Assembly (NCBI GenBank): GCA_965153285.1
Contig: OZ229113.1
Direction: 5' to 3' (one strand)
Length of the DNA stretch: 64,000 bases
Origin: Podarcis tiliguerta
Lineage: Eukaryota
Part shown: in pieces, positions 39,734 to 64,000 of the stretch
Numbering within the stretch: position 1 is the first letter of the stretch
Layout: each line of letters opens with the position of its first letter
The notes under the pieces: generated by a model
The model's input: the letters and a program-made list of their open reading frames with translations, nothing else
What the model was told of the DNA's origin: nothing
The model's database searches: none
Position numbers and translations under genes: made by a program

Positions 39734-39899
39734 ATGAAGTACATCCTGGTAACTGGTGGTGTCATCTCAGGCATTGGTAAAGGAATTATTGCAAGCAGCA
39801 TAGGCACCATCTTGAAATCATGCGGTCTACGAGTTACTGCAATCAAAATAGATCCTTACATTAACATAGATGCTGGAACCTTCTCGCCATATGAACATG
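39734..39899 (+). CDS. CTPS2: CTPS2 exon 2, coding part
   Basis: 166 nt, donor G|GTACGA. Confidence 0.96.
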
Positions 39900-42800: not shown

Positions 42801-45383
42801 ATCTTGTTGACAACAACCCCCAGGTGTTAGATTAGACTGAGAGATTGTGATTTGGCCAAGGCCACCCAGTGATCTTTGAGCAGAGGCTTAATCATAGGAC
42901 TTCCAAATCCAAAGTCTTCAGTCATCTTCATATGGATTAGTTTAGTGTCTCATAACCAAAGTGTGGTATAATTGCCAAAAGTTTTTTAAAAAATCTTTAT
43001 TTATTAGCTTAGTGTTCGAAACACACACCTAATGTATTTGACTGATGAAATAATCTTTGCAGGGCTGGCATTCCACTGTTGCCATATTTATCTCTGCGAT
43101 ACTGTTTTCTTATTTAAATGCATAACCTTTCCTGGATGGCAAGTAGCAATAAAACTGTTCAAAATGTTGAAAGCAAATGGCGACGACATATGTACAGTAT
43201 TTACAGAGGCATGTTTTAAAAATCTTATGCAGAAGTGTTCAAACCCACTTCACCAGTGTTTCTAATAGTATAGAACCAGCCGAAATTGGGTGAGTTCCAA
43301 CATTTCACTAGCTGATACTGTGGGACTTCTCATTCCTTTTCTCCCTGCTGAATCACCCTGTTAGCTTTCCCCCAGGTTGCTTCAGACAGTCCCCCAACCC
43401 TCTAAGCATATTGTTTCCTCCCTCCTAAAGACAAAATCATGTTTGTGCAAGAAGTAGTCTGTCGCACAAGTGGGATGCTACTCCTAGATATCATCCATTG
43501 CATTTGTACTTTATTTTCACTTCATTTATTCTTTTTTACTTTGGAGTTTTTGAGGGACCTTTTCAGATTCGTATATGAAAGGAATTTGCTATAGCTTTAA
43601 ATGCTATCTTTTTATTCTAATTTAACTGGATTGCCTCTGATTTTTACTTGGAACAGAGTTGTATCTTGTCATGCATTTTTCACCTTTTCTAGCATTACCA
43701 TGTGGTTTGCCTTGCAGTTGTCCCACATATTACTGATGCTGTTCAAGAATGGGTAATGAATCAGGCAAAGGTTCCTGTGGATGCTGATAAGAAAGAACCA
43801 CAGATATGTGTAATTGAGGTAAGTAAGAAATTGTGTGAAATAGTGGATAAAGACAGGGTTTGTTTTATAATGTGAATGCAGAGTATTTTTCCTCATTGGT
43901 TTTATTCTGTCATTCTAAAGCTACTTTTAATAACTGCAAGGAAATAATTATTAAACAATCATTATTTATTGCTATTACGTATGTGGGTTGCATTACAAAA
44001 GCAGTTGTCATATCCGTCAATAGCTACTTCTCATTGACCTATGTTATTTTTGGCAATCTGCATAGGATGGTAGTTCTTTCCTTTTTTAAAAAAAGCAACA
44101 CTAAACTAAAATTGAAGTATATAGAGGTGATATAAGTCAATTTCCTTTTGTGTTGCTCCAACTAGTTGACTATAGATATTCCTTTTCAGCTGGGTGGAAC
44201 TATTGGAGATATTGAAGGAATGCCTTTTGTTGAAGCTTTCCGACAATTTCAATTTAAGGCCAAAAGAGAGAACTTCTGCAATATCCATGTCAGCCTTGTA
44301 CCACAAGTAAGTCATTTTCATACTCTATTGTGCATTATTGTTTTACACATCTAAATTTTGGGGGGAAATATTCATATAGGGTATTTTTAAGGACCGTGAA
44401 CAATGAGCAAATTACATTAACTTGGTGATAGATGGGCTGATACCTGTTCATTTTATTCTCACCCTAGGTTTGGTTGCGAAAAATATAGTATCTTTTGGGG
44501 AAGGTTTGAGAAGCTAAACATTTATTACAGCTGATGAAATAGAATAAAGCCTAAACATTTTAGATGGACAGCACTGAGCCTTATAACAGATTTTAAGCAA
44601 TCATTTAATATAAAATAATCCATTAGCTATAGACACGTTACTCTGTTTGAAGATATGCTTTAGGAAATCTGGGAGACTGTATGACTCCTTTTTAGAGAAG
44701 TCCAACATGGGTCTGTGGCTTCATACTAATGAGACAAAGTAGTGTACAACTCTTACTGTGGATGTTTGTGCTCGGGCAACCATAGAACAAGTCATTAAAG
44801 CAGAGAAATAGCTACTTTAGTGGCTTCGGTGCATATTAATATAGTTGCTGATCAGATTTTAATTTTGCAATGGCAGTCAATGGTACAAAACATTTATTTT
44901 TCAGCCTAATGCTACCGGAGAACAGAAAACAAAGCCTACTCAGAATAGTGTTCGGGCTTTAAGAGGGCTTGGCCTTTCTCCTGACTTGGTGAGTTTGATA
45001 AAATTTTACAATACCATGTTAGAAAGGAAGGCCAGTATAAAGGTAGCAATATAACTCAGGCAGCAGGAGTGACTAGTTGGGGTGGTGGGCATTACGACAT
45101 ACCTAGTCTCTCTTCAGCATTGTCACTGCACTTATTAAGAGGTTGTTTGTGAGAGATGGCAAGGAAGTTGGCACAGTGGTGGATCCAATCCATCAGCTGC
45201 TCCTGTCAGGTTTGAGTAGGAATGTGTTCAATAAAATCATGAAAATGTGTTCAGAATCCAAATACTTTGTTAAATGTTTAGGGAAGCTTTTAATGTTTGA
45301 TGTATTACAGTATTTTAATATTTTTTTTGGAAGCCGCCCAGAGTGCCTGGGGAAGCCCAGCCAGATGGGCGTGGTATAAATAA

Positions 45384-45422
<39 letters not shown>

Positions 45423-48400
45423 ATAGCAATGTATTCTTTGATGGAACAGGTAATATGCTAATGGGATGTTAAGCTAGGTGTCCATTTGATCACACAACTT
45501 TGTTTCTTTCTGTGCCTGTTTGGTTTTCCACCTTCATGCTTAATCCTGGGAAAGTTAAGTACCTTAAACAGACATGCATATAAGTTTTCTATTTGAAGGG
45601 CTTGCCTTAAATCTTTCGCTGTGCATATTGGTTCAGATCTGGACTTCACTCCCTTAGGCGTGTTTTGTGAGTAGAGTTCCACTAGGGGCTAATTCTTGTC
45701 CTGGAATGGTGAGGTGTGAGCAGGCAACATTTGCCAATTTACTCATCGCTCTGCAGCCCCAGCGACACCTCACAGCATTTCTCCATCCACAAAATATTTC
45801 CATAGAAATATTTCCATAGAAAGAGCTTTTCCACATGTGGAAGGCAAATTCTGGATCCAATCTGCTTTGCTTATTTATTAGACAGTGAACCCCTCCCCTC
45901 CAAAAAAAGGGAACACATATTATTGAATGTTCTCTGGCAAAAGTACAAGACATGCAAGCGAGGCCCCAGTATATAGACGTTTAACATGTCCATTTATTTC
46001 AATCAGAAAAGCTCTTAACATGGAGGCAATTTGTGTATCCCCTGCTCATGCAGAGCAGCTCATTGTAGGGCAGAAAAAGAAACTTATAATCGTTTAGATG
46101 ATAAGATGCTGTTGTTTGACTGTAAGTTGTTCAATGGGAGTGTGTTTTTTCTTCCATAGAAATCAGGACATTTAAATATTATTTATTAGTTTGTTTGTTT
46201 GTTTGTTAATTATTTAAATAAATAAAAAGGAGGAAGATGTTGGTCTTTTCACAATTTGTGCTGCTTATCTGTAGATTTGTATTTTTGACAGATAGTCTGC
46301 AGAAGTACTAAACCTATAGAAATGGCTGTGAAAGAAAAGATTTCCATGTTTTGCCATGTGGAACCTGAACAGGTTGGTAAGGTCTTTAACAGTCACAGTT
46401 GTTCTAATGTCTGCAATCATTTTCTAAGTGTTTTATTTTTAGTTCATGTGACCGAGTATGTGGGACATTGGAGGCAGGTTGCGGGGGACAAACAGCAGCT
46501 CATTGAGATAATCAAAAAGCAAATAGTTATTTTCAGGATTCCTTTATTCTGTAATTTATAATAGTTTATGCATTATGCTACATACAGTAATATAGGCTAC
46601 AAACCTAGCTCTATTTGTCTGGGATTAATCCTCCTTGAATTCAGCATGATTTATGGAAGCTGTACGCCGGCTCCCTCGGCCAATAAAGCGAGATGAGCGC
46701 TGCAACCCCAGAGTCAGTCACGACTGGACCTAATGGTCAGGGGTCCCTTTACCTTTACCTTTTTAATCAGGTGATTGTGCTGTTCATCACTAGGACAATC
46801 AACTTATTCAGAAATCAGACTCCCATTACATCCCAGCAGAGGTCAGTGTTGCATTCTTAGACAAGCCTGCAGATTACAAATTTACTATTCAAAGTTGTCT
46901 AACCATGAAATGAAAACAGATTCATGAGCTCCCTCCCGCCCCGCCAGTGCAATTGTTTGTTTAGAGGCTGATAACTCAAAGGAAGAGGTGACATAATAGA
47001 AGTTTATGAAATTATGCGTAGCACGGAGAAAGTGGAAAGAGAAAAGTTTCCCCCCCTCTCTTTTAAGACCAGCACTTACTCTCCTAAGAGGCAAAGATGG
47101 CTTTAAAAGAGGATTAGACAAATCCATAGAGGAGAGGGTTCTCAATGGCTACTAGCCATATGACCACGCTCTACCTCCTCAGATGGAGGCAGCAATGTGT
47201 CTCAGTACCACTTGCTGGAAATTGCAGGAGAGAAGAGTTCTCTTGTGCTCATGTTCTGCTCCCTGGTTTCCCACAGGCATCTGGTTGGCCACTGTGAGAA
47301 CAGGATGCTGGACTAGACAGGCCATTTGGCCTGATGCAGCAGGCCCTTTAGATGTTTGATAGAAAATTATGCCTTCTCAATGCAAGTTAAAATACGGGAC
47401 CCATCAGATTTCCCCCCCCAATGTGGGTTTGCAGGAAGTGCAATTGTTTAGCGTTAAAAATAATAATGCATATTGGACGGCCAGTATATTACAAGCTTAT
47501 TTGCAGTGCAGTGTTATACATGAGTACTCAGAAACCCGGGGTCCAGAACAATCACAAGCTTTAACCAAAGAACAAATATTAGTTCCAGCTTGCATTGGTT
47601 TAATGCAACACGAAGCACCTGTGAGCTCGTCTCTTCGCATTGGCTTTGCTTGGTGTGATGTGTGAATCAGGCCTTTGTGTTTAGATTATCTGTGTGTATG
47701 TTGCACTAGGCACCATAGCAGAAGAGCCATGTATCAGATTCATTTGGGGCACTTTTTAATGAATTAATTGAACTGATTAATTAATTAAAATGATTACCAG
47801 CTAGCTTTAAAGTATTTTCTTCCTTTTTAGCAAGATTTTTAAATAGCTATATGATTGTATATGATTTGTATAGATGTACTGTATCTTTCAATTCTAAGTT
47901 TCACGTATCAGTAATTTAAATTTTGTATTTCATAGGTAATATTCATCCATGATGTTTCTTCCACTTACCGAGTGCCTCTTCTGCTGGAAGAGCAAGGGAT
48001 AATTAAATATTTTAAAGAGAGGTTGAATTTGCCAATTGATGACCAGCCAAGTGATCTTCTTTTCAAATGGAAGAAAATGGCAGATAGGTACTGTTCTTCT
48101 GTTTCTTCTTCTTCTTCTTCTTTTTACTTTGCACCTGCAAATCTATTTGCCACAGGGTAGCGAATAACACAATATGCAAACATAATTTTAATGATAGTCC
48201 AAAATCTCCCATTTGAGACAGAGCACTTTGCCCTGCTTATTGGCTGGAGCCTAGTTGTAATAGAGGTCTTAGCAATCTGAATTTACAGCGTTTCAGATTA
48301 TGTTTTTCCATGTGTTTTTTTTTAAAAACAAACCATATGTAAGAAATAGCTATTTAGACCAAAGGTAATTCAAGTTTATAAGTGGTTTAGTGACTTACTA

Positions 48401-51400
48401 AATATAAGAAAAAATGTCTCCCCCCTTCCTTGTGGAAATTTGCAAATTGATTGATCTTTTGTATTGTCAGGTATGAAAGGATGTTGAAGACATGTTCTGT
48501 AGCTCTGGTTGGCAAGTATACGAAGCTGAGTGATTGCTATACCTCTGTTTTCAAGGCCCTAGAACATTCAGCCCTAGCAATTAACCACAGACTCAATTTA
48601 ATGGTGAGGACTTACTGTATTTTTCCATGTATAAGACGACCCCCCCCCTTTTTAAAACCCAAGATTTAAGAAGTCTTAAGTCTCCCTAGGCAACTGTGCA
48701 TGCTTCCTATGTTTCTCCAATGCCGCCCGCCAAGCAAAGGGGTGGGGCAAGCCCAGGATTCACTTTCCTTACAGTGCTCCAGTTGCTGCCCTTAACCTTG
48801 CATGGTTTGCAGCATTGCGCTACCCAGCACCCATGTGTGTGCGAGAGAGAGTGGCACGTGCATCGGGGGGGGGGGAGGAGGAGGCAACACTTGCGGGGAG
48901 CTGTGCCTGCCTCCCATGTGGAAACCTGTCTTTGGTGGCGGAAGCTTTCACTGCAGATGGGAAGATCAAGGAAATCTTGGTCTCTGTGTTGCTGAAAGAG
49001 AGGGGCTGTATTTTTCCGTGTATAAGACAATCTAACATAATTTAGCAAAAAAATAAATCACCTTATACATGGAAAAATATGGTACCTTGCTTCCGTTCTT
49101 TGCATTCTCATTCCTTACCTAATAGCTAGGCTTTCACTTCATGAATATTGCTTAGAAATAAAGGATAAGTTGATTATAACTTAATGGGCATAGAACTATG
49201 AGTGACTTGAACATGATGTTTATTTTGAAAAACGATACAGTAATTCCCTTAACTGGATTTGTGCATTATGAAGGGAATTGCACACATTTAACAAATACTA
49301 AGGTGGATATTTGTTGACTTCATTAATCCTATTTGCAGCATTAAGTACTAAGGCATTGATTTAACATATGACTAGGAATATCCATTTCCACTTACAATTT
49401 TTCAACTGGCTAATCTACTTTAGGTGTAAGTGTTCTGTGGACTGTTGTTTTAACTCTACACTCCTGTGTTCCCCAGGAGAGCATTTCAGTATTTATAGGA
49501 AACATCAGATCTCACTTTCCAAAGCAGTAAAGAGAGTTCAGAGGAAAGAGGGGAGTATTCAGTATTGGATTACTCCTCCCCATAGAAACGTCCATGGCCT
49601 GTAGCTGCAGTGTCAGTAGTGTCAATGGGATGTATGCCCTGTGAGGACCAGAGGACGATTTGTAGCCAAAAGATCCAGCGACTTCTCAATCCCCCACCGC
49701 AGCCCCAAACAAGGAGATCAAACTATGCCAGCCTTGGAGCATTTATGTGAAGTATTGATAGCAGCAAGCTCCTGCATTTTACAGGCTTTCTTTGGCTGCA
49801 TGTGCCTGGCACATAACCTAAGCAGGATCTCACCCCCACTCATCAGCTAATTGCTATTGGGAACAGGCCCCTGCAGCCAATGCAAAATTGAACCCTGCCC
49901 TCCCTCCCCCAGCTGATGTCATGGGTGATATCAGCTGATTGACAGGTGGGTTTGGTTTGGGGGGAAATGGCTTCACAGGCCAAACTGGACCCCCTAATGG
50001 TTCAAGCTTGTCCTCCAGGCTGAAAGTTCCTCCACACCTGCCTTTTCATCATTTGGAAAAACAAAAAATGTAAAATAACTGCTTAAGGCATTTTCTATCA
50101 GAAAGTTAAAAGGGAATATAGTGATACAAGATAGTTTCGTAGCATAGCAAAGCTTTCATGTTGTTTAAGTTACAGCAATCCTAGTCATCTATGGAGAAAA
50201 GTAGGTACCATTCTGAGGCGATGGTATTTTTCATGTATTCAATTTTGCCCCCATTGGAAATGCCTATAGTTTTTTCATTAGTTATAGAGTATGAAGATCA
50301 TTATATGAAAATGATTGTATTGTCTTACACATGAATGTGAATGTGTATGTGCTTTCTTAATTAGTATATAGATTCAACAGACCTTGAAAATAATACAGAG
50401 GTTGAGAATCCAGTCAAATTCCACCAAGCCTGGCAAAAACTATGCAAAGCAGAGTAAGTGATGGTCTAGTTCTTAACCTCAAATAATTTTAAAAGTTTCC
50501 AGTTTCAATACCTTGTTGCCTTATAATTTCAAGTGCTTGATTTTGTTAGTTTATTCCTTTGCAAATATATTGTACAAAGACACATAGATTTGTTAAAAAC
50601 TCACATTAGCCCTTAAGCCAGGGCTTTCCAAACTTTTCATGTTGGTGACACACTTTTTAGACACACGTCATTTCACAACACAGTTATTCAGTTTTACCAG
50701 CAAACTGAAGATTAAACTAACCCCTTTCCAGCCCTGGGAGGAGCACAGGGAATGTTCAGGCAACATACCTACACACTGCAGCTGACACAGTAGCATGCCG
50801 CGACACACAGTTTGAAAAGCTCTGCCTTAAGCATTGGGATGCCTGTATTTAGAGCTTATCCATGCTGAATTGATACTATGATTCTGAACATGTTAATTTA
50901 AAGCAAACTTTCTGCAAAACTTACAATTTGTTCTGAGACTCTTAATAGGCACATAAAATGCCATGTAGACATGGAATTTTAAAACTGAACACTTGACAAA
51001 TGTAATGTTGATGGGCTGTTAAGAGATAACAAGAAGGATGGCTTAAACTGATTGCAAAGGCCTTGTGTTTTAATATATGCCTAGTCTAGTTTGTTTTGCA
51101 CAAATTTGTCAAATGTCATAAATTAAAATAAAACAAATGTATTTTAAAGTGTATATTTTCATTGAAATATAGTGGGAGCCTTTCTGAATGCTTCCACTAT
51201 TTCAGGTTTACAATTCAAAGCACCGGCTAGGATTCATAATGTGTGCACACTGTACACTTCGGCATTTTGGTCTGTAATTTGTGACTTGAAATTACTCCAG
51301 AATTGGTGAATAATTTGGTGAATGTTAATAGAGATTTATAGTATTTGAAGCAGAACTGATGCTTTATGGTGATTATGATGTATTTGTACTGTCCAGTTTT

Positions 51401-54400
51401 CATGATGTGAATTTAGTTGTATCATAGCCGTATTATTCTTGGATCAGAAATCTGAACAAGCTGAAAGCTTTTGTGCACAGTGAGGTCTTGCTGCTGTTCC
51501 TGTACATACATGTCACCCCCCCCCCCCAAAGAAACATGTTAAACTAACTCGCCATTCTATCTTCTCATCTGCTGCTGTGTTTGCATTTTGTATTTTATTC
51601 CAGTTGTATATTAGTTCCTGGAGGTTTTGGACATAGGGGAACAGAGGGAAAACTTCAAGCCATTTCATGGGCAAGAAAAAAGAAAAAGCCTTTTCTTGGT
51701 AAGACTTCAACATCAGGAGTGGGCCAACCTGCGCAGTCTCATATTTATAAACTAGAATCCATCTGCTTAACCGATGTGTTTTTGATTTACAAAACATAAG
51801 TGTCCACTCAGAGACTATTATTAATTAAGGCATGACTAATCTGTGATCAGTTGGCCTGAATATGCACTTCTTAGCGAAGTGCCCTACTAATTGAGATCAA
51901 GGCTCACCTAGTTCAGCATTTTAATTTTTTGCAAAAGTCACAGCAGCACTAGGGACCTACTGGAAATCAACTCGCCCTACCTTCTGCCCAGTGTTCTAGG
52001 CACATTTTGTGACAGGGAATTTCATTAGCGGCAGCAGTTTCTGATCTCTGGGTGCAGTACTGCACCTAAGATTTCAGATTAAAACTGCAGAGTGGAAGGA
52101 AAGGAGGGCCCTTTTCTGCCTCCCCACTTCCAGCTACTCTATGAAAACTGGAGAAGAGACCCTCTTAAGAATATTAGGGGGGTGGGCAGGGGAAGGACCA
52201 GGCCATGTGAAAAATGAACATAATATCTTAACTGCAGTTCATTCATTTTCAGCTTTGTATTCTTCTTATAAAAAAGCATGTCTAGACATTCCATTGTTGC
52301 GCTCATAACCTAGGATTAAGGTGCCATTTAGCTCCTAGCTTTCATATCTCAGTTTCTAACACTACTTCTGACTATTCCTGCAGTACACTTCCATTTCTTA
52401 CTGAATGTTTTTGACATGCAGCATGTTTACTCAGAAGTATATTGTACTGAGTTCAAGAAGACTTACACCCTCATAAGTGTGCATAGAGTTCTAGCTGTAA
52501 GGTTAAACTAGAGAAGATGAAACCATACTGGAGGACAGTTTAGATCAGGAAAACAAACAGTGCATGGGAGGAGGGTTAAATTTCCCTTTCCATTTTCATG
52601 GCCCCAATCCAAGTCTGTCATGGTTTCATTTATTCAACCTTTTATAACATTGAGGCTATGTGATTGTGTATGACCTATTGTTTGTTCTGATTTGGCCTCA
52701 GTGTTTAAAGTAAAACTAAACTTTGCTGAAAAAAGCAAAAAAGAGAAACTAAAAAAGTTTTCTAGTTCTTAGATAGGTCCATATATTCATTTCATTGGAG
52801 TATACAGTTATAAGTTTGGTCCCATTTAAATCGCTTTAGCAGAAGTAAATTAGGACTGGTCGGTTTTGATCTAGTAGGCATAATGAATCCTGTTGGGATT
52901 GTATTAAACAGTGAAAAACCTAATCTTTCAAATTAAATCCAAATCAAATGCTTAGCCCAATAGTTGCAAAGATAATTCTGAATTTTTATAAGGTCAAAAA
53001 TGTCCACTGTGGTCATTAGTGCCTGAAAAAGATGCTCACACAGTTTAGGAAGTCTGTAAATTGGGCTAAACATTTCAGGAATATAAAAATTTAATTGGTC
53101 TCTTGTGAAAAAATGCATCATTAGTTTTGCATACTGGAAAGCATTTCAGTTTTCACATTTGAAACTGAGGTTTGTTTTTATTATAATATGTTGCTACAAT
53201 GTTGAGTGAGTGGGAAAGAAATTGGTTTGGATTGTGTTTGGAAACAATTTGTTGCTGTTTTATAACATGTAAGAACTTCTATGGAATCAGTACCTGAGAG
53301 TTTCTAAGGTTTGATTTAAATGATATACAAATACATATATTGTAGAAACTGCTCATGTGGTTGCATTTTCTGAATATCCATGGTAGTTGGTCAGATATGG
53401 ACCCTGGATTTTAATATTCCTGAATCTGAGCTCCAGGCAGTGAATAGAGACAAATAATCAGCAAGGTATAGGGCAGTCTTCCTCAACCTTGGCCCTCCAG
53501 ATGTTTTGAGATGTTTCCCATTATCCCTGACCACTGGTCCTGCTAGCTAGGGATCATGGGAGTTGTAGGCCAAAAACATCTGGAGGGCCAAGGTTGAGGA
53601 AGCCTGGTATAGGGGAAATGAGAGAAAGGAATATAGGATGTCAGCAGGCCAAGTAAATAGAGGGAAGAAATGTATGGAACATCAGTGTTTGGCCTGTGCA
53701 TGTTTTTTTTCTTTTCCTAAATAGCAGTTGTGAAGTGAGGAGGTCCAGATTGGGACTATGGGAAGGGAGAGGGGTACAAAGGGTTAACAGTCCCTTCCTC
53801 CAGGCCATGGTCCCAATCTGCATGCCCCATAGCTGCCATTTAGCTAAGAAAAAGCAAGCATGCAATGGCCAATCACATTATTAACATCACATCTGGTTTG
53901 TACTTGAAAGGAGATGGAATAATGGGTGAAGTGTTAGAAGCAAATGGGGCATATGAGGGAAAGGCAGAGAGCATTATCATAATATTTGAGGAAGCGGGGG
54001 AAGAGAAGAATGAAGAGAGCAATGTATTACTTAATAGGGGAAGAAGTAGGGAGAAGGGGGAAGAGGTAGAGGATGTTGGTGGTTCTGGATCAAGCAGGAG
54101 CCAAAGGGAAAATGAGAATATGGTCCGAGAGATAGGAGAGAAAAACGGAATCTTATGTCAAAGTCTGGGGTTGTAGCTTGAGGCAATATTTGCACCACTA
54201 ATGAACATATAGGTACTTACCTATAGCAGGCACTTCCGGTAAGGTTTTCATTGATTAATCTGGGCAGACTGCATTTGCCTATTTTGCCAATCCTGTGATT
54301 GTTTTGTGCTGGCAAGTTGAGGGTGAGCTGCCAAGGCTGTACTAGAAAACCAAACTTACAGGGTTCTGGCATTGCCAGGAAGAATTGTTCCCTCCACCCC

Positions 54401-55100
54401 AAACTACTCTGAATTTAAATAGTGGTTAGTGAGAAGTGATTTGTTGCAGCAGTTAATGGAAAAATCTTTTGGCAAACACATTTGATTTCATTTTTATATT
54501 AAATCCCACTTTCCCATAATTGAGTTCTCAAAAGCTGATAAATATGAACTGGGTCATGGCCTAGAATATAAAAAGTGTGAGTTTTTGTGCTCATTCATTC
54601 TTTCCTGTTTCTTCTAGGGGTTTGCTTGGGGATGCAGCTGGCAGTAGTGGAGTTTGCAAGAAACTGTCTAAACTGGCAAGGTGTGTTACCTTCTATGAAA
54701 ATTGTTCATGTAAAGCAGGGATGGGTGACATTTGCTAGCCAGTGGGCTAGATCTCTCTGCCATGCCAATTTGACTGGTGGACAAAAAATTGTTATTTCCT
54801 GACCCTCATCTTCATTCTTCTGCTGTGGATGTACTCCTTATATTGGCCTTTAGCTTATCTTTATTTCCTGAAACAAGGACAAGTGAAGTGCTGTAATTTT
54901 GAACATATGTCTCTCTGTGGATGTTAAAATTCATATGATCCCCCCAAACGTTTTGCTGATATGTGTGCCAAAAACCTCTCCTTCAAAATGACAAAGGTGC
55001 TGTATTTAGTTTCACCATCTTTAACATTTTAAAATGTAGTTGCTCTTTTTCTGCAGATGCAAATTCTACAGAATTTAACCCAAACACAAAGAATCCTGTT
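39734..55100 (+). CDS. CTPS2: CTP synthase 2, coding exons 2-13 (3'-partial; continues beyond the window)
   Basis: [42 protein letters not shown]; GGFG oxyanion strand; catalytic GVCLGMQ; CTPS2-type residues and SYAP1 synteny. Confidence 0.96.
40499..41142 (+). mobile_element. Solo LTR (Gypsy-like) in CTPS2 intron 2
   Basis: TGTCA...TAACA ends flanked by a 4-bp ATAT duplication; internal TATAAATA and AATAAA ~41003-41019. Confidence 0.6.
42572..42742 (+). CDS. CTPS2: CTPS2 exon 3 ([21 protein letters not shown]...KTVQ)
   Basis: 171 nt, AG/GT ends. Confidence 0.96.
43718..43818 (+). CDS. CTPS2: CTPS2 exon 4 ([11 protein letters not shown]...ICVIE)
   Basis: 101 nt, AG/GT ends. Confidence 0.96.
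44190..44306 (+). CDS. CTPS2: CTPS2 exon 5 ([13 protein letters not shown]...SLVPQ)
   Basis: 117 nt, AG/GT ends. Confidence 0.96.
44905..44988 (+). CDS. CTPS2: CTPS2 exon 6 ([13 protein letters not shown]...SPDL)
   Basis: 84 nt, AG/GT ends. Confidence 0.96.
45384..45420. repeat. (ATT)n microsatellite (retroposon tail)
   Basis: Direct reading. Confidence 0.9.
46292..46372 (+). CDS. CTPS2: CTPS2 exon 7 (IVCRSTKP...VEPEQ)
   Basis: 81 nt, AG/GT ends. Confidence 0.95.
46661..46764 (+). mobile_element. 5'-truncated Sauria/Squam1-like SINE 3' end
   Basis: GCGAGATGAGCGC...GGTCAGGGGTCCCTTTACCTTTACCTTT tail. Confidence 0.7.
47936..48087 (+). CDS. CTPS2: CTPS2 exon 8 ([14 protein letters not shown]...KMAD)
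   Basis: 152 nt, AG/GT ends. Confidence 0.96.
48471..48603 (+). CDS. CTPS2: CTPS2 exon 9 (YERMLK...VGKYTKL...LNLM)
   Basis: 133 nt, AG/GT ends. Confidence 0.96.
48615..49082. mobile_element. Tc1/mariner-pogo type MITE, 11 bp inside CTPS2 intron 9
   Basis: TIRs CTGTATTTTTCCATGTATAAG / CTTATACATGGAAAAATATGG with TA flanks. Confidence 0.75.
50365..50453 (+). CDS. CTPS2: CTPS2 exon 10 (YIDSTDLE...[12 protein letters not shown])
   Basis: 89 nt, AG/GT ends; keeps the His equivalent to the filament-forming H355. Confidence 0.95.
50619..50824. mobile_element. hAT MITE
   Basis: TIRs CAGGGCTTTCCAAACT / AGTTTGAAAAGCTCTG; perfect 8-bp TSD CCTTAAGC. Confidence 0.85.
51604..51698 (+). CDS. CTPS2: CTPS2 exon 11 ([16 protein letters not shown]...KPFL)
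   Basis: 95 nt, AG/GT ends. Confidence 0.96.
53474..53606. mobile_element. Palindromic hAT MITE
   Basis: Long TIRs; perfect 8-bp TSD GTATAGGG. Confidence 0.88.
54618..54680 (+). CDS. CTPS2: CTPS2 exon 12 ([20 protein letters not shown])
   Basis: 63 nt; glutaminase catalytic Cys. Confidence 0.96.
55057..55100 (+). CDS. CTPS2: CTPS2 exon 13 ([14 protein letters not shown])
   Basis: 44 nt, AG/GTAAGT ends. Confidence 0.95.
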
Positions 55101-56529
55101 GTAAGTATTGAATTTCCCCTTATGATAGATCTTTTGTGCTGGCTACTTAACAATTGTGTCAGTCATAGTGACATTAAGAGAGGCTGAGAGTTTGTTCCTC
55201 TATAGCAGGGGGTGGGAAATCTGTGGCGCTCTAAATATTGCTAAACATTACTAGACTTCCATCTCTTCCAAGCAGCACCAACCTGCCCAAATGATGAGGG
55301 ATTTTGGAAGTTGTATTTCAGTGGGTCACATGTTCCCCATACCTTTTTCATATCCAAAGAAATAATTGCACATTTGTTAATATTCCATTTTGTATGTTCT
55401 GGTGCTCAGCTCCAACAGAGAAAACATTTTTGGCATTTTGCCCTGATGATCTCTGGTCTCAGTTAATGAGACTTTCCATTAGACAAATTTAATGGGATAT
55501 CACCATTGCAATTGATCAAACTGTAAAGAGGTTGCATAAGAGAGGTCATAGAGCAAATAAGTGAATCATTTGCAAATTGCTGATGGGTTTTGGATAAATC
55601 TGTTTAAAAAGATCATTATCTTGAGGATTAGTAAATGAAGAAGTAATAACAGTACTAATTTTAGCAGTTGCAGGTGGTCAGAATAATTCTGGAATTACTT
55701 TAATGTCAAAAACACCCTAACCATTATCATGCATTGATCAAGAGCTGACTAGTGTTCTGTATAGGATAATAGAGCCCATATTAAAGAATATGTCTCTGGT
55801 TGGACTTTTCAGATAGCTTTTGCCAAGCTCCCCAGCTCTAAAAAGCCTTTGCATTCGGAGATGTACTCCTATTTTTAGGGTTCAAAAGCCAGCTAAAAAA
55901 CAAGAACCAGAAGTTATGAATAACAGAGAATTTTACAGTGGAGAGTTGTAAACAGCTGGCTAGTAAGATTAGGATTATTTGGTGGTGGTTGGTGCCCATT
56001 GGTGCATTCCATAGGATGCAAGGCAGAGAGACCAACAGCTGGTGGAGCCAGAACGAGCGACCAACAGACCCAGTCCTAGACTGGTTGTAAGCAAAATGAC
56101 AGGTGGGTGGCTGAGGGCAGACTGAGCTGGTGGGGCAGTGATCCTAAGAGCCATAGCAGAGAAAGCTCATATAAAATGTCAACTCAGTGTAATGCAACAG
56201 TGAAAAGGGCCAAGTTTTTAGGAACAGGACTAGATATATATAAAAAGAAGTATTAACCATAGACTTCGTCCAGTTGCATATGCTTTGTGTAAACCCTTTA
56301 AATCTACTGGTCAAGATGGTGCATGGTTTTACCAGTCATCATACATGCATGGTTTCAAAGCAAATAAAGTAAATAAAGTAGATTTTTATTCAATGACATC
56401 CATCGTTCCACAATGATTAAATTTAGTTTTAGAGAGATTCTTTGTACAAATATAATTGTAAATGTCCATAATAGGTTGGTTTGGGGATCTTGGAAGTACT
56501 TTCTGTCTGTTGTCTCTTCATTGGATGCC

Positions 56530-56679
56530 TTAGGAGAGCAAACCGGTTATTCCAGCCAAATTAGACAATCCTGCCAAACTGCCTAACTTGCTCATCAGTG
56601 CCTTGAAGTCATTAAAGTTGATTTTTCCATCTTTATCCAAGTCCGCGTATTTGGATATATCGTTGAGAGACATTGAACC
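56530..56679 (-). CDS. S100G-like exon 3, coding part (canonical EF-hand plus extended tail)
   Basis: Acceptor cttacag, loop DLDKDGKINFND, TAA at 56530-56532, AATAAA at 56385-56390. Confidence 0.85.
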   Translation of the reverse strand, partial: GSMSLNDISKYADLDKDGKINFNDFKALMSKLGSLAGLSNLAGITGLLS

Positions 56680-59600
56680 CTGTAAGTTTTATTTGGGTGG
56701 TGGTAAGGGAGTGGAAAAGAAAGCAAAATAGTTTTATATACGATAACTTTCAGAATAGTGAGTTACAGAACATATTTAAGCTAAATTCTTTCCTTGAAAC
56801 ATGGTTATCTATACACAATAATTTTGAGCCAGCCTTTTCATTTCCTTATAGGCGGTGTACAATTTTATCAGGGTATATGTTGGGTACACCTATGAACAAT
56901 TCTGGAACACTGTTTTTTCCCCCATCAGCCCTGTTCTGTGTTCCTCTTCCAAGTTAGAAACGGAGACAATATTCCTTGCCTTTCTCTCAGGAGTTAGAGG
57001 CTACATTTGGTTTGGGAAAACAGGATGTGGGAGCAGGTATAAAAAAGTAGACCTGCCCTGTCCCTTACTTGGCCTGAGTGAATGGCCTCATTGATGGGTG
57101 ATGGAGAACTGGGAGAGTGGATTAGAAAAGAACTGTAATTCCCCTTCACATCCAACATAACAGGCTTTTATTGGTTTCAAACACTGCCTTTCAAAATAAA
57201 AATATATAAATACAATTTTTTATATTTATAAATATTTTCCCAAAGCATAATAGAAATATAAAATGAAAATATATCAAAACAGATACCTAAATCATAATTT
57301 AAATACTGAAACAGAAGTTTATAAAACAAACATTGAAATACTCCGCTAACCAATATATGCAAAAGCCATTAATTATAATTATAAGTTTTTTAACTTTCCA
57401 AAGTTGTTTTTCAAATAGTTGTGACTCGCCCCGTGACCTTAGCGTTGAAGGGTGGGTAACAACTTAAAATACCAACGAAAACAATAATAATTGACTCTAG
57501 CATCACACCAAGATATGTAGCTTGAGTAAAGGGACGTTAAGAAGTGGGGCAGATAGAATCTGGCTTAGTTCACAAGGGCTCTCAGTGAATTAACTGAGTA
57601 CCATTCACATCTGTGGAAAAAAACCAAAGCACTGTACTTGGACCAGTTAAGCTAGAAAGCTAAACCACTGAGCTTTTGTTACGGTGCAAAATCTGCTCTG
57701 CTCTTGACACTTAGTGGCTCAGCCTCCGTGGCCATTGCATACTCTCCCTCTAGCAGTCCTCTTGTACTGAACAGACAGTCTACAGAAAGGTATAATAGGC
57801 CAGGAAAGCAAACCTAACTCGCTGTGCCTTTAGCGTCACAGCCAAAGTATGCTTTGGTCCTGCCCAAACCTGCCTTTAATTTAGGGAGATGGCAAGGCAA
57901 ATGTTAAAATCTGATGACATAAGATTGACATGAGACCCATATTAGTAGGCCTCCATTAGCCTGTGGCTGGGATTTTGTTATTATTATAGAAACCAGACAT
58001 GGTGTCTCTGTGCCCGGCCGCTTTTGTTCCAGGCCACAACCAGGATCACAGCACTGCCATTCACTGAACAAGTGCTTCCCAAGAACATTCGGCAACTATT
58101 TTTAATCCCAGGCTGCTGCTTGTGGGAAAAGCAAGATTAGATCTGTGGACGAAGAACAATCTCTTGGCTGTTGCTGGGAGGTGTGAAGGAACTTTGCATT
58201 GAATGAATGGCATGACCATGCTGCTGTGCACCTTGTGAAAGAGGGTTAGGACTTCTGCTCAACACTCTACATGGGGCACAAAGATTGCACTACTCTCAGT
58301 AGCTGTACCAGGCACGCTAACAAAAATAAGATACATTTGCAGATAGTTCAGTCTACTTTTGCAGAGCATTTTAAGCATTTACTTTCACACTGCTTTTTAA
58401 AAAGTGCAGCTGCACCCTTTTCCTCATACTTTGTTTTATTAGCACGCTATGTGCTTGTTTGAGAGAGTGCATTTATCTCTTAGTATTTTAGCTTTTGTGC
58501 TAGCAAATGCTGTTTGTGAATGTGACCTGTGGTGCATATTCTTTTTGTGGCATTCTTATCTACTGGGTATTATTATTTCTTTTAATACTTCTATGACTCA
58601 CATTAAGCTGAAAGACAGTGATTGCCCACCTAAATGGGTATCTGAACATGTATTTCTTCATTGTTCAAAACAAACACTCTAGCCACTAGATTGTACTGAT
58701 CCTAACAGCTCTGGTGAGTTACATTTTTCAGCTGCAATTTTCCCTTAATGTATATTCCCACTGTCCTTGCTAAACTCATCTCACTTATGACCACAAAACA
58801 ATAATTTTGTTCCAAAACTATTATAAAAATTACTTTTATGTAAAATTTATCTCCAATATTAGCTTTCACTAAATACCTAAATGAAACACTTACATTTTAG
58901 CAAGGAGCATATATTTTTTAAAGTACCTATTAATTGTGCATAGTTTTCTCTAGATTTCATTTTGCACAGAAATGGATAGACTAGACCAGGCTTCCTCAAA
59001 CTCGGCCCTCCAGATGTTTTGAGACTACAATTCCCATCATCCCTGACCACTGGTCCTGTTAGCTAGGGATCATGGGACTTGTAGGCCAGAAACATCTGGA
59101 GGGCTGAGCTTGAGGAAGCCTGGACTAGACTCTTTGTTTCAGAAAGCACTGGAATACTTATTATGATTTTAAACAGAACTTAAGCAAATTTGCTAACATT
59201 TACTCTGTACACAGGTATTAACCCATTCTTGTTTGGGCCTGTTCTGACAGAGTCTTGTTTATATCCATTGAACACTTTGGGGTCTGGTTGTTGTTGTTTT
59301 TTAAATCTTCCTGCTGGAGGCTACCATATTAAAAACTGGATGCTACCATATTAAAAGAGAAAGAAAATTTTGAGGGCTTTATATTGTTGGCATATTCAGC
59401 AAGTTCACTAGGTAATTCTTAGAGCACCCTTCTGTTGTTCGAAGTCCTGACTTTGATATCTTTCCACTGTGGTTCTCAATTTATAATTTCCCCACCTATT
59501 CTGTAACCCAGTGACGCTCTTTATGTAAGTAATTTAGAGAGGACTCTCGCCTCAAAAACCAACAACTAACTTCAGCTAAAATAATAATTTTGTTTTCAAA

Positions 59601-60453
59601 ATTTGATATTATAATCAACTTCCTTGTCTCTAGCTACTTAAGATTCTAGCAGTAACTAAAATTTCACCATAACACGTTCATAGATTGCCCAGTGTTTTGT
59701 ATAATCAAACCCATATATTTGTCTAAAGAAACCCTTAAAATGTTAATTAAAATGTTTGAAAAACATTTTGATGGAGAGATTTCAATGTTTGAAAACATGA
59801 TTTCATCTAAATTAAAACTTTTCAAGTGCGATCAACAAAAACAATCTAAACATTGCAAATGTTTTTCTGAACAATATTTTCAGCATGTAAAGACAAACAT
59901 TCAAGCATCAGTGTACTAGATTTCTTTTTGCCTTGTTACCTTTTGTAAAACATGCTTTTCTTAGGATCAGATTATCCTGCTTTTCTTAGGTTGCCTAACA
60001 GCTACAAATAATCATTATAGAAGCAGTTCACCAAAGTAAAGCCTATATTAATTTCATTCAGACTTGGATATGAAGCTACATAAATTATTACAATGAATGG
60101 AAGCTGTTGTCTATCTTACTAAATTATTCCCACATTGCTGTGCCTCCCCATCCCTCCCTTGCTGTCCAGTCATGTTTTAAACTCTTCAGAGCTTCGTTGG
60201 ACTATGTCCCTTGTTTGTCCTTTAGTGAATTGGATTTGTTTGGAAAATACCACAAATTAGATGCAGGCTTCAGTAAATATTAATGTTATCTAGTGTAATT
60301 GGCAGTGCAATTTGGAAGACTTACCAAAACATTTGAGAAGTGGCTCTGAATCAAACTTTTAAGTCCGTCCATGGAAAGCAGATGCTTGCTACCTTCTTTC
60401 ATAGCATACTGAGTGAAGAGACTTAAGAGTTGGTCACTATTAAATTCTGCCAT
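56530..60453 (-). CDS. S100G: S100G-like (calbindin-D9k family) EF-hand protein, 92 aa, nested antisense in CTPS2 intron 13
   Basis: Two coding exons joined in phase 0: MAEFNSDQLLSLFTQYAMKEGSKHLLSMDGLKSLIQSHFSNVL + GSMSLNDISKYADLDKDGKINFNDFKALMSKLGSLAGLSNLAGITGLLS*; same position and exon layout as mammalian S100G; orthologue versus paralogue is unresolved. Confidence 0.8.
58987..59122. mobile_element. Palindromic hAT MITE (same family as 53474-53606)
   Basis: CAGGCTTCCTCAA / TTGAGGAAGCCTG; perfect 8-bp TSD GACTAGAC. Confidence 0.88.
60325..60453 (-). CDS. S100G-like exon 2, coding part (pseudo EF-hand)
   Basis: Acceptor ctcttttacag (exon starts 60472), ATG at 60453, FxxYAxKEG motif, donor TTG|GTAAGT. 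Confidence 0.88.
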
Positions 60454-60862
60454 ATTTGTGTATATTCGAAAGCTGTAAAAGAGCAAACAAAGTTAACCTA
60501 TTTTGAAGTTTATAGAGGGGAAATACATTGATTTAATACGACATCTACATAGGTATGTGGAAAATGTAGTTTTATATAGCAATTACAATGAAGCCATTTT
60601 CTCTTAAGTTGCTAATTCTGCTCATACAACATTAATTGCAAGCTAACTGACATCATATGTGAAACTTCTGACATGTAAGAAGCTGCGGTATTTTCTCCTG
60701 TGGAAAAACTTTATCATGTTTTCCTGAAATATATTTTTCCTGGAAAGATAAAAAACACATTTTTCTTTATACACTGTGGTGCACTGCATTCTGAAAGTAG
60801 TAGAATTGAGGACATTCATAGAAGACATCCAAAAAGACATAAAATAAATAAATCATAATTAC

Positions 60863-60935
60863 CCAATACTCCAAAAGCAGAGGCTCTGCAAACGCAATGT
60901 GAGAAGCTCAGGGCTGAGGCATCCTTTTATGTCTC
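60863..60935 (-). promoter_or_regulatory. S100G-like TATA-type element (CATAAAAG ~60924-60931) and short non-coding exon 1 ending 60863
   Basis: TATA-like box about 30 nt upstream of a ~40 nt exon ending TGG|GTAATT; typical S100 layout. Confidence 0.65.
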
Positions 60936-62006
60936 TCCCGCTCCACCCTGTTATGCCTCTCACTCCGCCCTGATTATGAAATTTGTCTTTGCTGACAGAT
61001 GTTAGCAGTGTAACATACTTTTAGCATTCAAGTTTATTTTTTTAAAGAACAAAATATGGTAATTGGATGCACCCTGCCGGTGTATCTTAAAAGCTTTGCT
61101 TTTTTCCTTTTCAGATGTGTTTTTGGGATAAGGAAATAGCTGGATATTGCTAGAACTTTGTTATATTTTTAACAGCAGCCCACGCTTTTGTCAGGTCTAT
61201 ATAGGATCTTTGTAACCAAGCACATTGCAGTATTACAAGTTTTTCCTGATTCCCCTCATTCATACTTGTGATACATCTGTGTGGTGTAAGTAGGAAATGC
61301 CACAGCATGCCCTGGCCCATGCCAGCACTGGAAGGCCCATGTCTGATAGTTAAGTCTATATCGATAAAAGAAGCACTTACAGCAACTCCCGCAGCGCATA
61401 TGCACAAACATGCCTCTAGCCACCAAGCAACTCTCCCCCCACAGATATGCTCCTTGCAGTGCAGTTGCAGCAACAGTGAGACCCTGCCCCTCTGCTGGCT
61501 TATATTCCCTCACCTGGTGGGTTGTACACCGACAACCTGAGACGTCTTCTGCATGGAACTCATTGCCTCTCTTCTTGCTTCAAGCACCTCCTGGTTCTCA
61601 GAGACAGTGGGTTGGGGGAAGGTGGGCAGTCTCCCGACCCATCTGTCACTTGAACAGCCTCTTCTTCTGCCACATCCTGCACACCTTCCTTCACCTCCGA
61701 CTCTCCCTCCTCCCCATGCCCTGGCTCCTACTTGCGGGTGGCGTCAAACCCCATAAGTTACTGGTCCCCTCTCCGGGGTCACTCCCTCGGTCCCCTGCCT
61801 CCGCCACACACTCTTCAGAGCCCCGTCAGTCCCTGACATAGCAATGCACTTAGCATAGCTTCATACTAGATAGCACACCTGTAGCCCTTGAAAACATCTA
61901 TCCTTCCAAAGAAATTAAGTAACCTAGAAGAAGGGTTTTTTTCTTCCGCTGCTCTGCCTATATTTAGTTTTCAAACAGATTTACTGAGGGAACAAGAGTT
62001 TCAAGC

Positions 62007-62007
62007 A

Positions 62008-62047
<40 letters not shown>

Positions 62048-62064
62048 AAGAAAGAAAGAAAGAG
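62007..62064. repeat. (AG)n/(AAAG)n microsatellite
   Basis: Direct reading. Confidence 0.9.
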
Positions 62065-63599
62065 AATGAGTTATAAAATGACTATTAAGTCGTCCTGATT
62101 TTACCACAATTCCATGTAGTTTTGGCATTTTAGCAGGATGTTAGAAACTAATATAGACAAATGGTTTTCAGAAGAGATAGGTAATACAGGTAGGTGGCAG
62201 CTACCTGTAGTTTGTAAAATAATATTTTAAGCAAAGTATACTGACTTCATTGGCCGGTAGTAGTATATCAAATTTCAAATCTGAATTCAGGACAAACTAA
62301 GCTGATACTTTTAATGAATTCTCTATATCACTGGTTCCCAATTAGCTATTTACTGAGGACCCCCTATATTTCAAAGGCCAAGCCACAGACCCCCTACTTT
62401 TGAAAAATTTTATAGCTCCATGGTAGTTACCTCTGCAGAGCAATTTTTTGAACAAAATATGGGGTAGCCCCTAAGAAGCAAAGGATTTTAGGTATATTAA
62501 AAAACAGACTAGGGCTGAGCAATACCTGGTTTTCAACATTGTGATATATCAGCAGCTAAACATCACAACATTCCGATATATCATGATGTCTGAAAAGGAA
62601 GATCAGGCATGGGGATGAGGGAAGGAACGGTCACAGAGATCTGTTAAGAGAGTCAAGTAAGTATTTGTGAGGGAGTGGGGTGGGTGCCACTGCTGGTCTG
62701 CTTCAGGTTACTGCATTAACTGCACCTTATTAGTGATGATGTTTTAAATCTTCAGAACGACACACCTGTTTGTTGTGACAATGAAGAACACTGCTACTGT
62801 TGTATTGTTGGCTGCATAGCACTGATTTGTTACCATGATGATGCCTGCTGCCATTTACTCCCTGCTTATCTCCTCTCCATCTAAACACCCCCACATTTCT
62901 CATAGGGCGTATGCTATATAAACTGGGTGTGTACATTGAATCTAGGCAGCTTAATGATTGGCCTAGGGCGCTAGGATATTTAATTCTGAAGTTATTGCTG
63001 GCCTAGAAGGAATATGGTCCTTTCCATCATTTCATTTCTGATAATAAGATCTAAGAAAACTTATTAATCTTCAGTTATAAACTGTTATTCATCTTGTGCA
63101 TTTCTGTACCCCCATCTGTTGTATTGATAAATGTATTTACAACAGAACAAATCTTTGCTAACGAATTTATTCAAAGGTAGTATGATGCTGAGAGACATGA
63201 TGTTGTTTGACAGGGTTAAAGGAAAGGCAACCGCTGCAGGAGACTCAGGAAGTGGGGCTTCTAAAGCAAACAGGCAGAAGTATTGCATGTTTGGATGAAG
63301 GCATGCCAAGAGAAGCAATCGCTATATAAAAGCTAGTTCCTAAGTTCCATCCTGCTCTGCCAAACTCAGACGGGTCCAACATTCATACTGTTTCACTACA
63401 AAATGTCATTTCTTGCTGTTATCAACTATAAAATCTACCTACAGTATACATTAAACTGGGAAAAACAGGACTTTATTTTGCATTTTTGGCAGTTTATGTA
63501 TTGGTGGGGGGTGGGGATGAAATCACATGTACATGATTCGTAATGGTGTCCGTTTCCTAATCGTAAAGGTGATTCAATAATGTATGGAAGGGATGCTGT

Positions 63600-63760
63600 G
63601 GATTGTTTTAGGGATCCAGATTGGAGATCCTGTCTCAGATGTAGCTGCAGCTCTTTCTTCTCCAAATTTGGTGGATACCTTTTGGTTTGTGCAAGTTGAG
63701 GATGTGGACATAATTCTTGGGAAAGTGTGGTCAACTACATTCTTGCCTATCCTGGCTTAC
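63600..63760 (+). mobile_element. Decayed L2-like LINE ORF2 fragment
   Basis: Plus-strand EDVDIILGKVWSTT resembles the L2 pre-RT motif. Confidence 0.4.
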
Positions 63761-64000
63761 GACAGCACTTTAGGACTGAATTGCTTGGTGATAAATATCC
63801 CATTTAGTAAGTATCCCATTAGAAAAAGGAACAGATTTTTAAAATTAACAATCAGTCTCCAATACACCATTCTTAGACAACATATCTGAGTGTGTTGTGG
63901 TATTTGGCCTTGTAAAATCTGGGTTTGTTTTGTTCAGGTAATTGGGAATGGCAGTGAATAAAGGTGGCATTTAGTTCTAGTTTTTTTCTTTTAATTTTTT

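Follow-up and report, generated by a model that had tools for sequence, protein, structure and literature searches.

Calbindin-D9k, encoded by S100G, is the textbook model of EF-hand cooperativity and is commonly regarded as a calcium buffer of the mammalian intestine. It combines an S100 pseudo-EF-hand, of which the terminal bidentate Glu is the only side-chain ligand, with a C-terminal EF-hand (PDB 1cb1, 2bca, 3icb and 4icb). In mammals, S100G lies antisense inside CTPS2 and has a three-exon plan, and its functional class is vitamin D- or oestrogen-regulated in intestine, uterus and kidney. Altered EF-hand loops are known from two other proteins that are relevant here. S100A10 (p11) has lost Ca2+ binding in both EF-hands, has deletions in its loops and forms an obligate dimer that binds annexin A2. 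In the parvalbumin E101D mutant, the -Z Glu-to-Asp change was reported to lower Ca2+ affinity and to raise Mg2+ affinity; Asp at position 12 of an EF loop lowers the affinity for Ca2+ and favors Mg2+. Reptiles and birds are usually considered to use calbindin-D28k, and mammals D9k (PMC4280901). Here, we describe an S100-type gene in a stretch of 64,000 nucleotides (nt) from Podarcis tiliguerta (contig OZ229113.1 of assembly GCA_965153285.1; hereafter, the window), which lies antisense in the CTPS2 intron after position 55106. The locus is very probably the squamate orthologue of S100G, a three-exon, TATA-driven and polyadenylated gene that is antisense in CTPS2 and encodes a two-EF-hand protein of 92 amino acids (aa). 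This identification is based on the position inside CTPS2, on the exon plan and its intron in the hinge, on a similarity to calbindin D9k that is graded among the orthologues, and on the name given to the gecko protein in RefSeq.

The protein family was determined by searches run exon by exon, or with natural full-length orthologues. Exon 2 matched Pfam S_100 (PF01023; E = 1.2e-6, 28.5 bits, cut-off 22) and exon 3 matched Pfam EF-hand_1 (PF00036; E = 4.7e-7, 29.3 bits, cut-off 25.4). Among solved structures, the top matches of exon 2 were to calbindin D9k (1cb1, E = 1.6e-4), with S100A6 and S100B ranking below it; exon 3 alone gave calmodulin-type matches first, like any canonical EF-hand. An earlier reading of the same DNA, made from the letters alone (hereafter, the first-pass annotation), had called the gene intact, S100G-like and composed of three exons, and the Pfam matches, the calbindin D9k match and the RNA joints described below agree with this.

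Direct reading of the minus strand, to which all coordinates of the gene refer, gave a TATA-like box, three exons, a 92-aa frame (43 + 49 codons) and an AATAAA signal, so that the main features of the first-pass annotation, including the non-coding exon, the ATG at 60453 and the phase-0 intron, were reproduced. The TATA-like box ATAAAAGG is located at 60923-60930, and the RNA 5′ ends are found 37-48 nt downstream from it. The non-coding exon 1 (60863-60886), delimited by the ends of adapter-tagged RNA contigs and by a joint to exon 2 in a contig of run X9, ends at the donor ...GTATTGG/gtaatt at 60863. Its 5′ end is the limit reached by the RNA contigs, and the true start may be slightly further upstream. 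The gene had been drawn from 60935, but this position belongs to the TATA region and the RNA starts at approximately 60886. Intron 1 (60473-60862; 390 nt, gt..ag) was defined by reading and by RNA contigs. Exon 2 (60325-60472) starts after the acceptor ttttacag/CT at 60472 and consists of 19 nt of 5′ untranslated region (UTR), the ATG and 43 codons, as determined by translation; it encodes the S100-type pseudo-EF-hand. The start ATG has A at -3 and G at +4, a good Kozak context, and the donor gtaagt follows after 60325. Intron 2 (56680-60324; 3645 nt, phase 0, gt..ag) separates ...FSNVL from GSMSL..., that is, it is located in the hinge between the EF-hands, and its joint is present in contigs of runs X1, X5 and X9. 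Exon 3 (56366-56679), defined by translation and by the poly(A) end, starts at the acceptor cttacag/GGT at 56679 and contains 49 codons (56679-56533), the TAA at 56532-56530 and approximately 164 nt of 3′ UTR to the proximal poly(A) site. The AATAAA signal (56385-56390) is 140 nt past the stop, and the poly(A) site seen in RNA follows 19 nt later. Exon 3 had been described as absent from the program-made list of open reading frames (ORFs); its frame is in fact partly visible there as a 47-aa ORF starting with ATG.

Transcription was inspected by comparing positions 56200-61150 with contigs of four runs from four studies: X1 (organism A), X5 and X9 (organism B), and X8. Organisms A and B are coded relatives of the window's organism, with an intron divergence from the window of about 3.3% for A and 5-7% for B. 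None of the runs was recorded as RNA, and the RNA-like contig sets, which were small, were only guessed to be RNA; near-complete contig sets from a further organism, H, are probably DNA of the source. The joint of exon 2 and exon 3 (56678/60324, corresponding to the junction 60325/56679) was found in contigs of X1, X5 and X9, that is, in three studies and two organisms. It skips 3645 nt, with CT..AC at the borders on the plus strand, equivalent to GT..AG on the minus strand. The word depths of the contigs with the joint were 8100, 4325 and 660 in X1, X5 and X9, compared with approximately 50, 15 and 15-29, respectively, for intron contigs. In X9, a T-run loose end at 56366 corresponded to a minus-strand poly(A) tail 19 nt after AATAAA. 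The depth contrast and the poly(A) tail indicate RNA, and DNA or a retrocopy does not fit. At the 5′ side, contigs of X1 and X5 stopped in Illumina adapter at 60886 and 60882, respectively. A contig of X9 passed from exon 2 into 121 other letters, of which the 13 next to the junction match the window at a single place, 60877-60865, where exon 1 has its 3′ end. This is evidence for the 60863/60472 junction, with a single substitution in organism B. Of the two junctions for which the first-pass annotation had proposed a search of RNA reads, the coding one was thus recovered in three runs and the 5′ one is supported by the X9 contig. The gene is transcribed, spliced as predicted and polyadenylated in close relatives of the window's organism. 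Run X8 was almost silent at the locus, the only one of the four, so that expression differs between samples and may depend on tissue or condition.

Several further features of the transcripts were observed. Past the proximal poly(A) site, contigs of X5 (875 nt, depth 840) and X1 (depth about 92-99) continued beyond 56200; the X5 contig points to an additional 3′ end in organism B, distal to the first, and hence to a form with a longer 3′ UTR in the relatives. An X1 contig ran unbroken from 60397 to 60886 through intron 1 at a depth of 641, compared with 9206 for the exon 2 bin, which suggests partial retention of intron 1, or a start inside it, in organism A; X5 showed almost none of this. In addition, a contig of organism A lacked 432 nt of intron 2 (58202 to 58635; window 58203-58634), and a transcript contig of organism B lacked 36 nt immediately downstream of the proximal poly(A) site (56329 to 56366; window 56330-56365).

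Homologues were collected in successive searches. A HMMER scan with exon 2 across 1.84 billion representatives returned seven matches, including a genomic read-through from a relative with 98% identity, XP_077199277.1, named 'protein S100-G [Paroedura picta]' (89 aa, a gecko), and an alligator hypothetical protein. The homologue search with exon 3 alone found none under a length window of 27-86 aa, which shut out orthologues of 89-92 aa; when the gecko protein was the sole query, the same search gave nothing beyond that protein itself and a single fragment. A family profile was built from the gecko and alligator proteins and the two window exons as separate rows. With this profile we found a 92-aa skink protein, lerEdw1_016646 of Lerista edwardsae, deposited as a hypothetical protein, an 81-aa 'protein S100-G' in four turtles, and S100-G-type proteins in pigeon and several passerines, some of them named as such in RefSeq. 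Identity to the window exons was 32/43 and 38/49 for the skink (70/92, 76%), 28/43 and 27/46 for the gecko (55/89, 62%), and approximately 21/43 and 12/31 (about 45%) for turtles, birds and alligator. The turtle, bird and alligator proteins were 65-81% identical among themselves and the squamate proteins were 46-53% identical to them, with 64% between gecko and skink. In a maximum-likelihood tree, the two window exon rows formed a clade with skink and gecko (support 100/100), with the skink nearest to both rows. The branch from this clade to the other sauropsids was 0.86 changes per site in this tree, which had no outgroup.

Calbindin D9k was the first match of all four full-length orthologues compared, leading the next single-domain S100 family by 9-19 bits. 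The scores for calbindin D9k and for that next family were 56.3 and 37.6 bits for turtle, 49.3 and 40.6 for alligator, 44.7 and 25.8 for skink, and 36.7 and 20.5 for gecko. An S100P-annexin A2 chimera scored higher for turtle and alligator because the scores of two domains are summed. The descending series of turtle, alligator, skink and gecko is what is expected of a fast-evolving orthologue. The position of the coding intron is also shared with the other sauropsids, since exon 2 ends at the same place (...QYLK/VS) in genomic read-through products of birds and turtles.

Two observations concern the annotated proteins of this family. In pigeon (Columba livia), the adjacent S100-G-type loci Q9966_007615 (P0014) and Q9966_007614 (P0018) are 80% identical, a lineage-specific tandem duplication in a bird. 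Four proteins, P0006 (alligator KYO30237.1, 127 aa), P0016 (Passer domesticus, 128 aa), P0010 and P0027, have N-terminal extensions with no alignable counterpart in the family, and the start Met of the family is internal in them (in alligator, it is M47). In the birds, '...SSRQHLRN' is common to the extensions and immediately precedes this Met; the stretch resembles translated 5′ UTR, so that the extensions are likely annotation artefacts.

The fold was modelled with AlphaFold2 (AF2) on the natural 92-aa skink orthologue and the family alignment. The model had a mean predicted local distance difference test score (pLDDT) of 78, and its four helices and two short strands correspond to an EF-hand pair. 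The top Foldseek match, above S100B, was Ca2+-loaded calbindin D9k (2bca), with a template modelling score on the target of 0.80 and an identity of 40%. Calbindin-D9k is thus the best match in both sequence and, through the skink model, fold, and it shares with the window the combination of an S100 pseudo-EF-hand and a C-terminal EF-hand. The short hinge is shared as well: the family aligns with that of calbindin-D9k with at most one gap, whereas other S100 proteins need three extra residues. The hinge in the window is one residue shorter than in mammalian S100G, and turtles, birds and alligator have one residue (Lys) more than the window.

Comparison of the loops revealed where the squamate protein differs from calbindin-D9k. 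Site I (residues A17-G30, AMKEGSKHLLSMDG; 60364-60405), located by HMMER alignments to calbindin D9k, corresponds to AAKEGDPNQLSKEE in mammals and ALMEGSTSALSIGG in turtles and birds. The terminal Glu of mammals is replaced by Gly in every sauropsid copy found, Gly30 in the window. Site II (residues D56-D67, DLDKDGKINFND; 56608-56643), located by translation and the family alignment, is a 12-residue EF loop in which positions 1, 3, 5, 6, 8 and 9 are kept. In turtles, birds and alligator it is canonical (DKNNDGKVSFEE), but position 12 is Asp in the window (Asp67) and in the skink (DIDKDGKVNFND), and positions 1 and 12 are both lost in the gecko (QVDKEGKISFDA). Instead of two sites each closed by a bidentate Glu, the window protein accordingly has Gly30 and Asp67 at the closing positions. 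Relative to calbindin-D9k, the differences are an identity of approximately 40% (skink), Glu to Gly in site I and Glu to Asp at position 12 of site II. The position-12 change is the same as in parvalbumin E101D, which belongs to a different family and is not an S100G background. The protein would be expected to fold like monomeric calbindin D9k but, since site I lacks its Glu and site II has Asp in place of Glu, no longer to bind two Ca2+ with high affinity. It would most likely work in the cytosol with a single weakened Ca2+/Mg2+ site, probably at high abundance wherever the gene is expressed.

The other difference from calbindin-D9k, which ends shortly after helix IV, is an uncharged C-terminal tail (L75-S92; 56533-56586, located by the family alignment). 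In the window protein, Lys74 is followed by 18 uncharged residues that form six hydrophobic-small-small triplets (LGS LAG LSN LAG ITG LLS), with a mean Kyte-Doolittle hydropathy of 1.26. The skink has a corresponding tail (LQS LAG LAN LAG LAG LTS) in a protein of the same length; the gecko tail has five such triplets and is three residues shorter. Turtles, birds and alligator have no tail and end after a few polar residues shortly after helix IV, so that their 81-aa S100-G shares site I Gly and the intron position with the window but differs in the canonical site II, the extra hinge Lys and the missing tail. As a monomeric, minimal member of its family, S100G is also set apart from other S100 proteins by a short hinge and no C-terminal extension; the hinge of the window protein is short, and its tail is 18 residues long. 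In the skink model, helix IV extends into the tail, with low confidence (pLDDT 42-50). An origin of the tail from an 18-nt tandem repeat was considered but is weak at the level of the DNA: Tandem Repeats Finder found no tandem repeat in the tail-coding DNA and the two full 18-nt units are alike in only 12 of 18 positions, although the peptide is periodic. The tail has been kept since the split from the gecko, which argues for a function, and suggests that it may add a protein or membrane contact without counterpart in mammalian S100G.

The host gene was confirmed by six-frame reading, which gave CTP synthase exons on the plus strand from 39746 to the exon at 55062-55106. The latter encodes part of the glutamine amidotransferase domain and is the final CTPS2 exon before the host intron. 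Five of the CTP synthase exons matched Pfam CTP_synth_N or GATase, and a 51-aa exon scored 77.7 bits against CTP synthase 2 and 66.7 bits against CTP synthase 1 (PDB). The S100-type gene is found in the next intron after the exons of 39746-55106, so that the nesting of mammalian S100G is reproduced in the window. The antisense location inside CTPS2 that the first-pass annotation had proposed is thus borne out by the plus-strand CTP synthase exons, and the number 13 given to the intron is plausible to within one. Its statement that the gene has moved much further away from its mammalian counterpart than CTPS2 has was also confirmed, as the 51-aa CTPS2 exon is approximately 80% identical to mammalian CTPS2, compared with approximately 40% identity between the skink orthologue and calbindin-D9k.

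The first-pass annotation had left two readings beside each other, a fast-evolving orthologue and a lineage-specific tandem paralogue with a new function, with a conventional S100G further along the intron outside the window. The former is favored by the graded series and by the fully supported squamate clade. A paralogue, with the conventional copy further along the CTPS2 intron or elsewhere, is improbable: although tandem duplication of S100G does occur in sauropsids, as in the pigeon pair, although the window ends inside the intron, part of which lies beyond it, and although the branch between the squamate and archelosaur clades is long (0.86 changes per site), tblastn with the gecko, alligator and other family members detected only this one locus, and a second copy within the 64-kb window was rejected. 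The profile search gave no squamate protein of the 81-aa type, which is weak evidence at the thin coverage of squamates, and all squamate forms in it, the gecko, the skink and unnamed Logan read-throughs of exon 2, bear the tail. The gecko form is named S100-G in RefSeq, and the position and phase of the intron as well as site I Gly are common with archelosaur S100-G. An incipient pseudogene that is still transcribed while its EF-hands decay, and whose tail arose by read-through, would explain why the terminal Glu is gone from both loops and why the protein diverged fast compared with its neighbours. We rejected this reading and consider it hardly credible, because the frame is open with canonical splice sites and a good Kozak context, gecko, skink and window share the 89-92-aa architecture, the position of the intron and the tail, and spliced contigs are far deeper than intron contigs. 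In addition, exon 3 of organism A shows no difference from the window over 155 nt, compared with 50 differences in 1515 nt (approximately 3%) for the introns.

A more serious question is whether calcium still matters to the protein. The orthologue could have been neofunctionalised into a Ca2+-independent adaptor or membrane factor acting through the tail, with both sites dead as in S100A10, and this is possible although doubtful. Site I has no Glu in any sauropsid, and gecko site II lacks positions 1 and 12 while the frame and the tail are conserved; the 18 uncharged residues after the last Lys, with the hydropathy given above, also fit such a role. However, site II of window and skink keeps Asp/Asp/Asp/Gly/Ile-or-Val/Asn/Asp at the ligand and structural positions and the exon that encodes it in the window passes Pfam EF-hand_1. 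The hydropathy of the tail is under usual transmembrane values, and its residues reach a pLDDT of only 42-50 in the skink model. S100A10 offers a precedent for an abundant and functional S100-fold protein with crippled loops, not an orthologue, and unlike in S100A10, the loops of the window protein are of full length, as judged here from sequence. We would advance only tentatively the broader proposal that squamate S100G left the calcium-buffer role, with site I dead in the sauropsid ancestor, site II weakened or lost, the fold maintained by selection, and the conserved triplet tail providing a new, largely Ca2+-independent contact to a protein partner or a membrane.

Some points also weigh against our preferred reading, namely a squamate S100G orthologue with one weakened site. 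The acceleration is placed on the squamate side only by bit scores against mammalian calbindin, and the view of a weakened site is drawn from loop residues, whereas an Asp in position 12 does not preclude Ca2+ binding. The RNA was obtained from two relatives rather than from the window's organism itself, in runs guessed to be RNA and with hidden tissues, and contig depth is a poor measure of expression.

The surroundings of the gene contained a few other elements. The core promoter (60925-60970, minus strand) has an imperfect direct duplication, GGGCGGAGTGAGAGGCATAACA followed by GGGTGGAGCGGGAGAGACATAAAA, in which a motif GGGYGGAG...CATAA precedes the TATA-like box, so that GC-box-like and TATA-like motifs are each present twice. 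A consensus scan near the gene gave no good oestrogen response element (ERE) or vitamin D response element of the direct repeat 3 type (DR3-VDRE), an absence that proves nothing. Rfam had no match within 55000-64000, including an interspersed repeat of intron 2 at approximately 58856-59187, a similar copy of which, sharing a reading frame, is found at approximately 53531-53650. The word depths of this repeat were about 8,600 to 118,000 in the four runs, with many different loose ends at 58981-59023, indicating a high-copy, widely transcribed element, possibly like a short interspersed nuclear element (SINE). Finally, the Logan contig product P0007 (97 aa), an unnamed read-through of exon 2 with approximately 50% identity in the exon, shares a 10-residue stretch with the window at 60227-60256 (FVIFSKQIQF and FVVFSKQIQF, respectively), approximately 65-70 nt into intron 2, which may be a conserved intronic element beside the donor.

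Equally diverged copies are already present in public protein sets, so that the gene is not new. The first-pass annotation had made novelty depend on whether such an orthologue was already described; public copies do exist, but as automatic annotation only, and literature searches for S100G in lizards, squamates, reptiles or birds, or at CTPS2, returned no relevant paper. The loss of the site I Glu across sauropsids, the decay of site II in squamates and the conserved squamate tail seem to be undescribed. The locus represents neither a new gene nor a new kind of system and changes no major view, and its interest is modest, as a variant of a known protein. Sauropsids retain an S100G orthologue without the site I glutamate, and squamates further alter site II and add a tail. 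As far as the loops can tell, this would provide a natural series of calcium-site decay in the S100G fold: mammals have two sites, turtles and birds a single canonical one, the skink and the window species a single site with Asp-12, and the gecko probably no site. If squamate S100G did leave the calcium-buffer role, it would be a natural parallel to S100A10.

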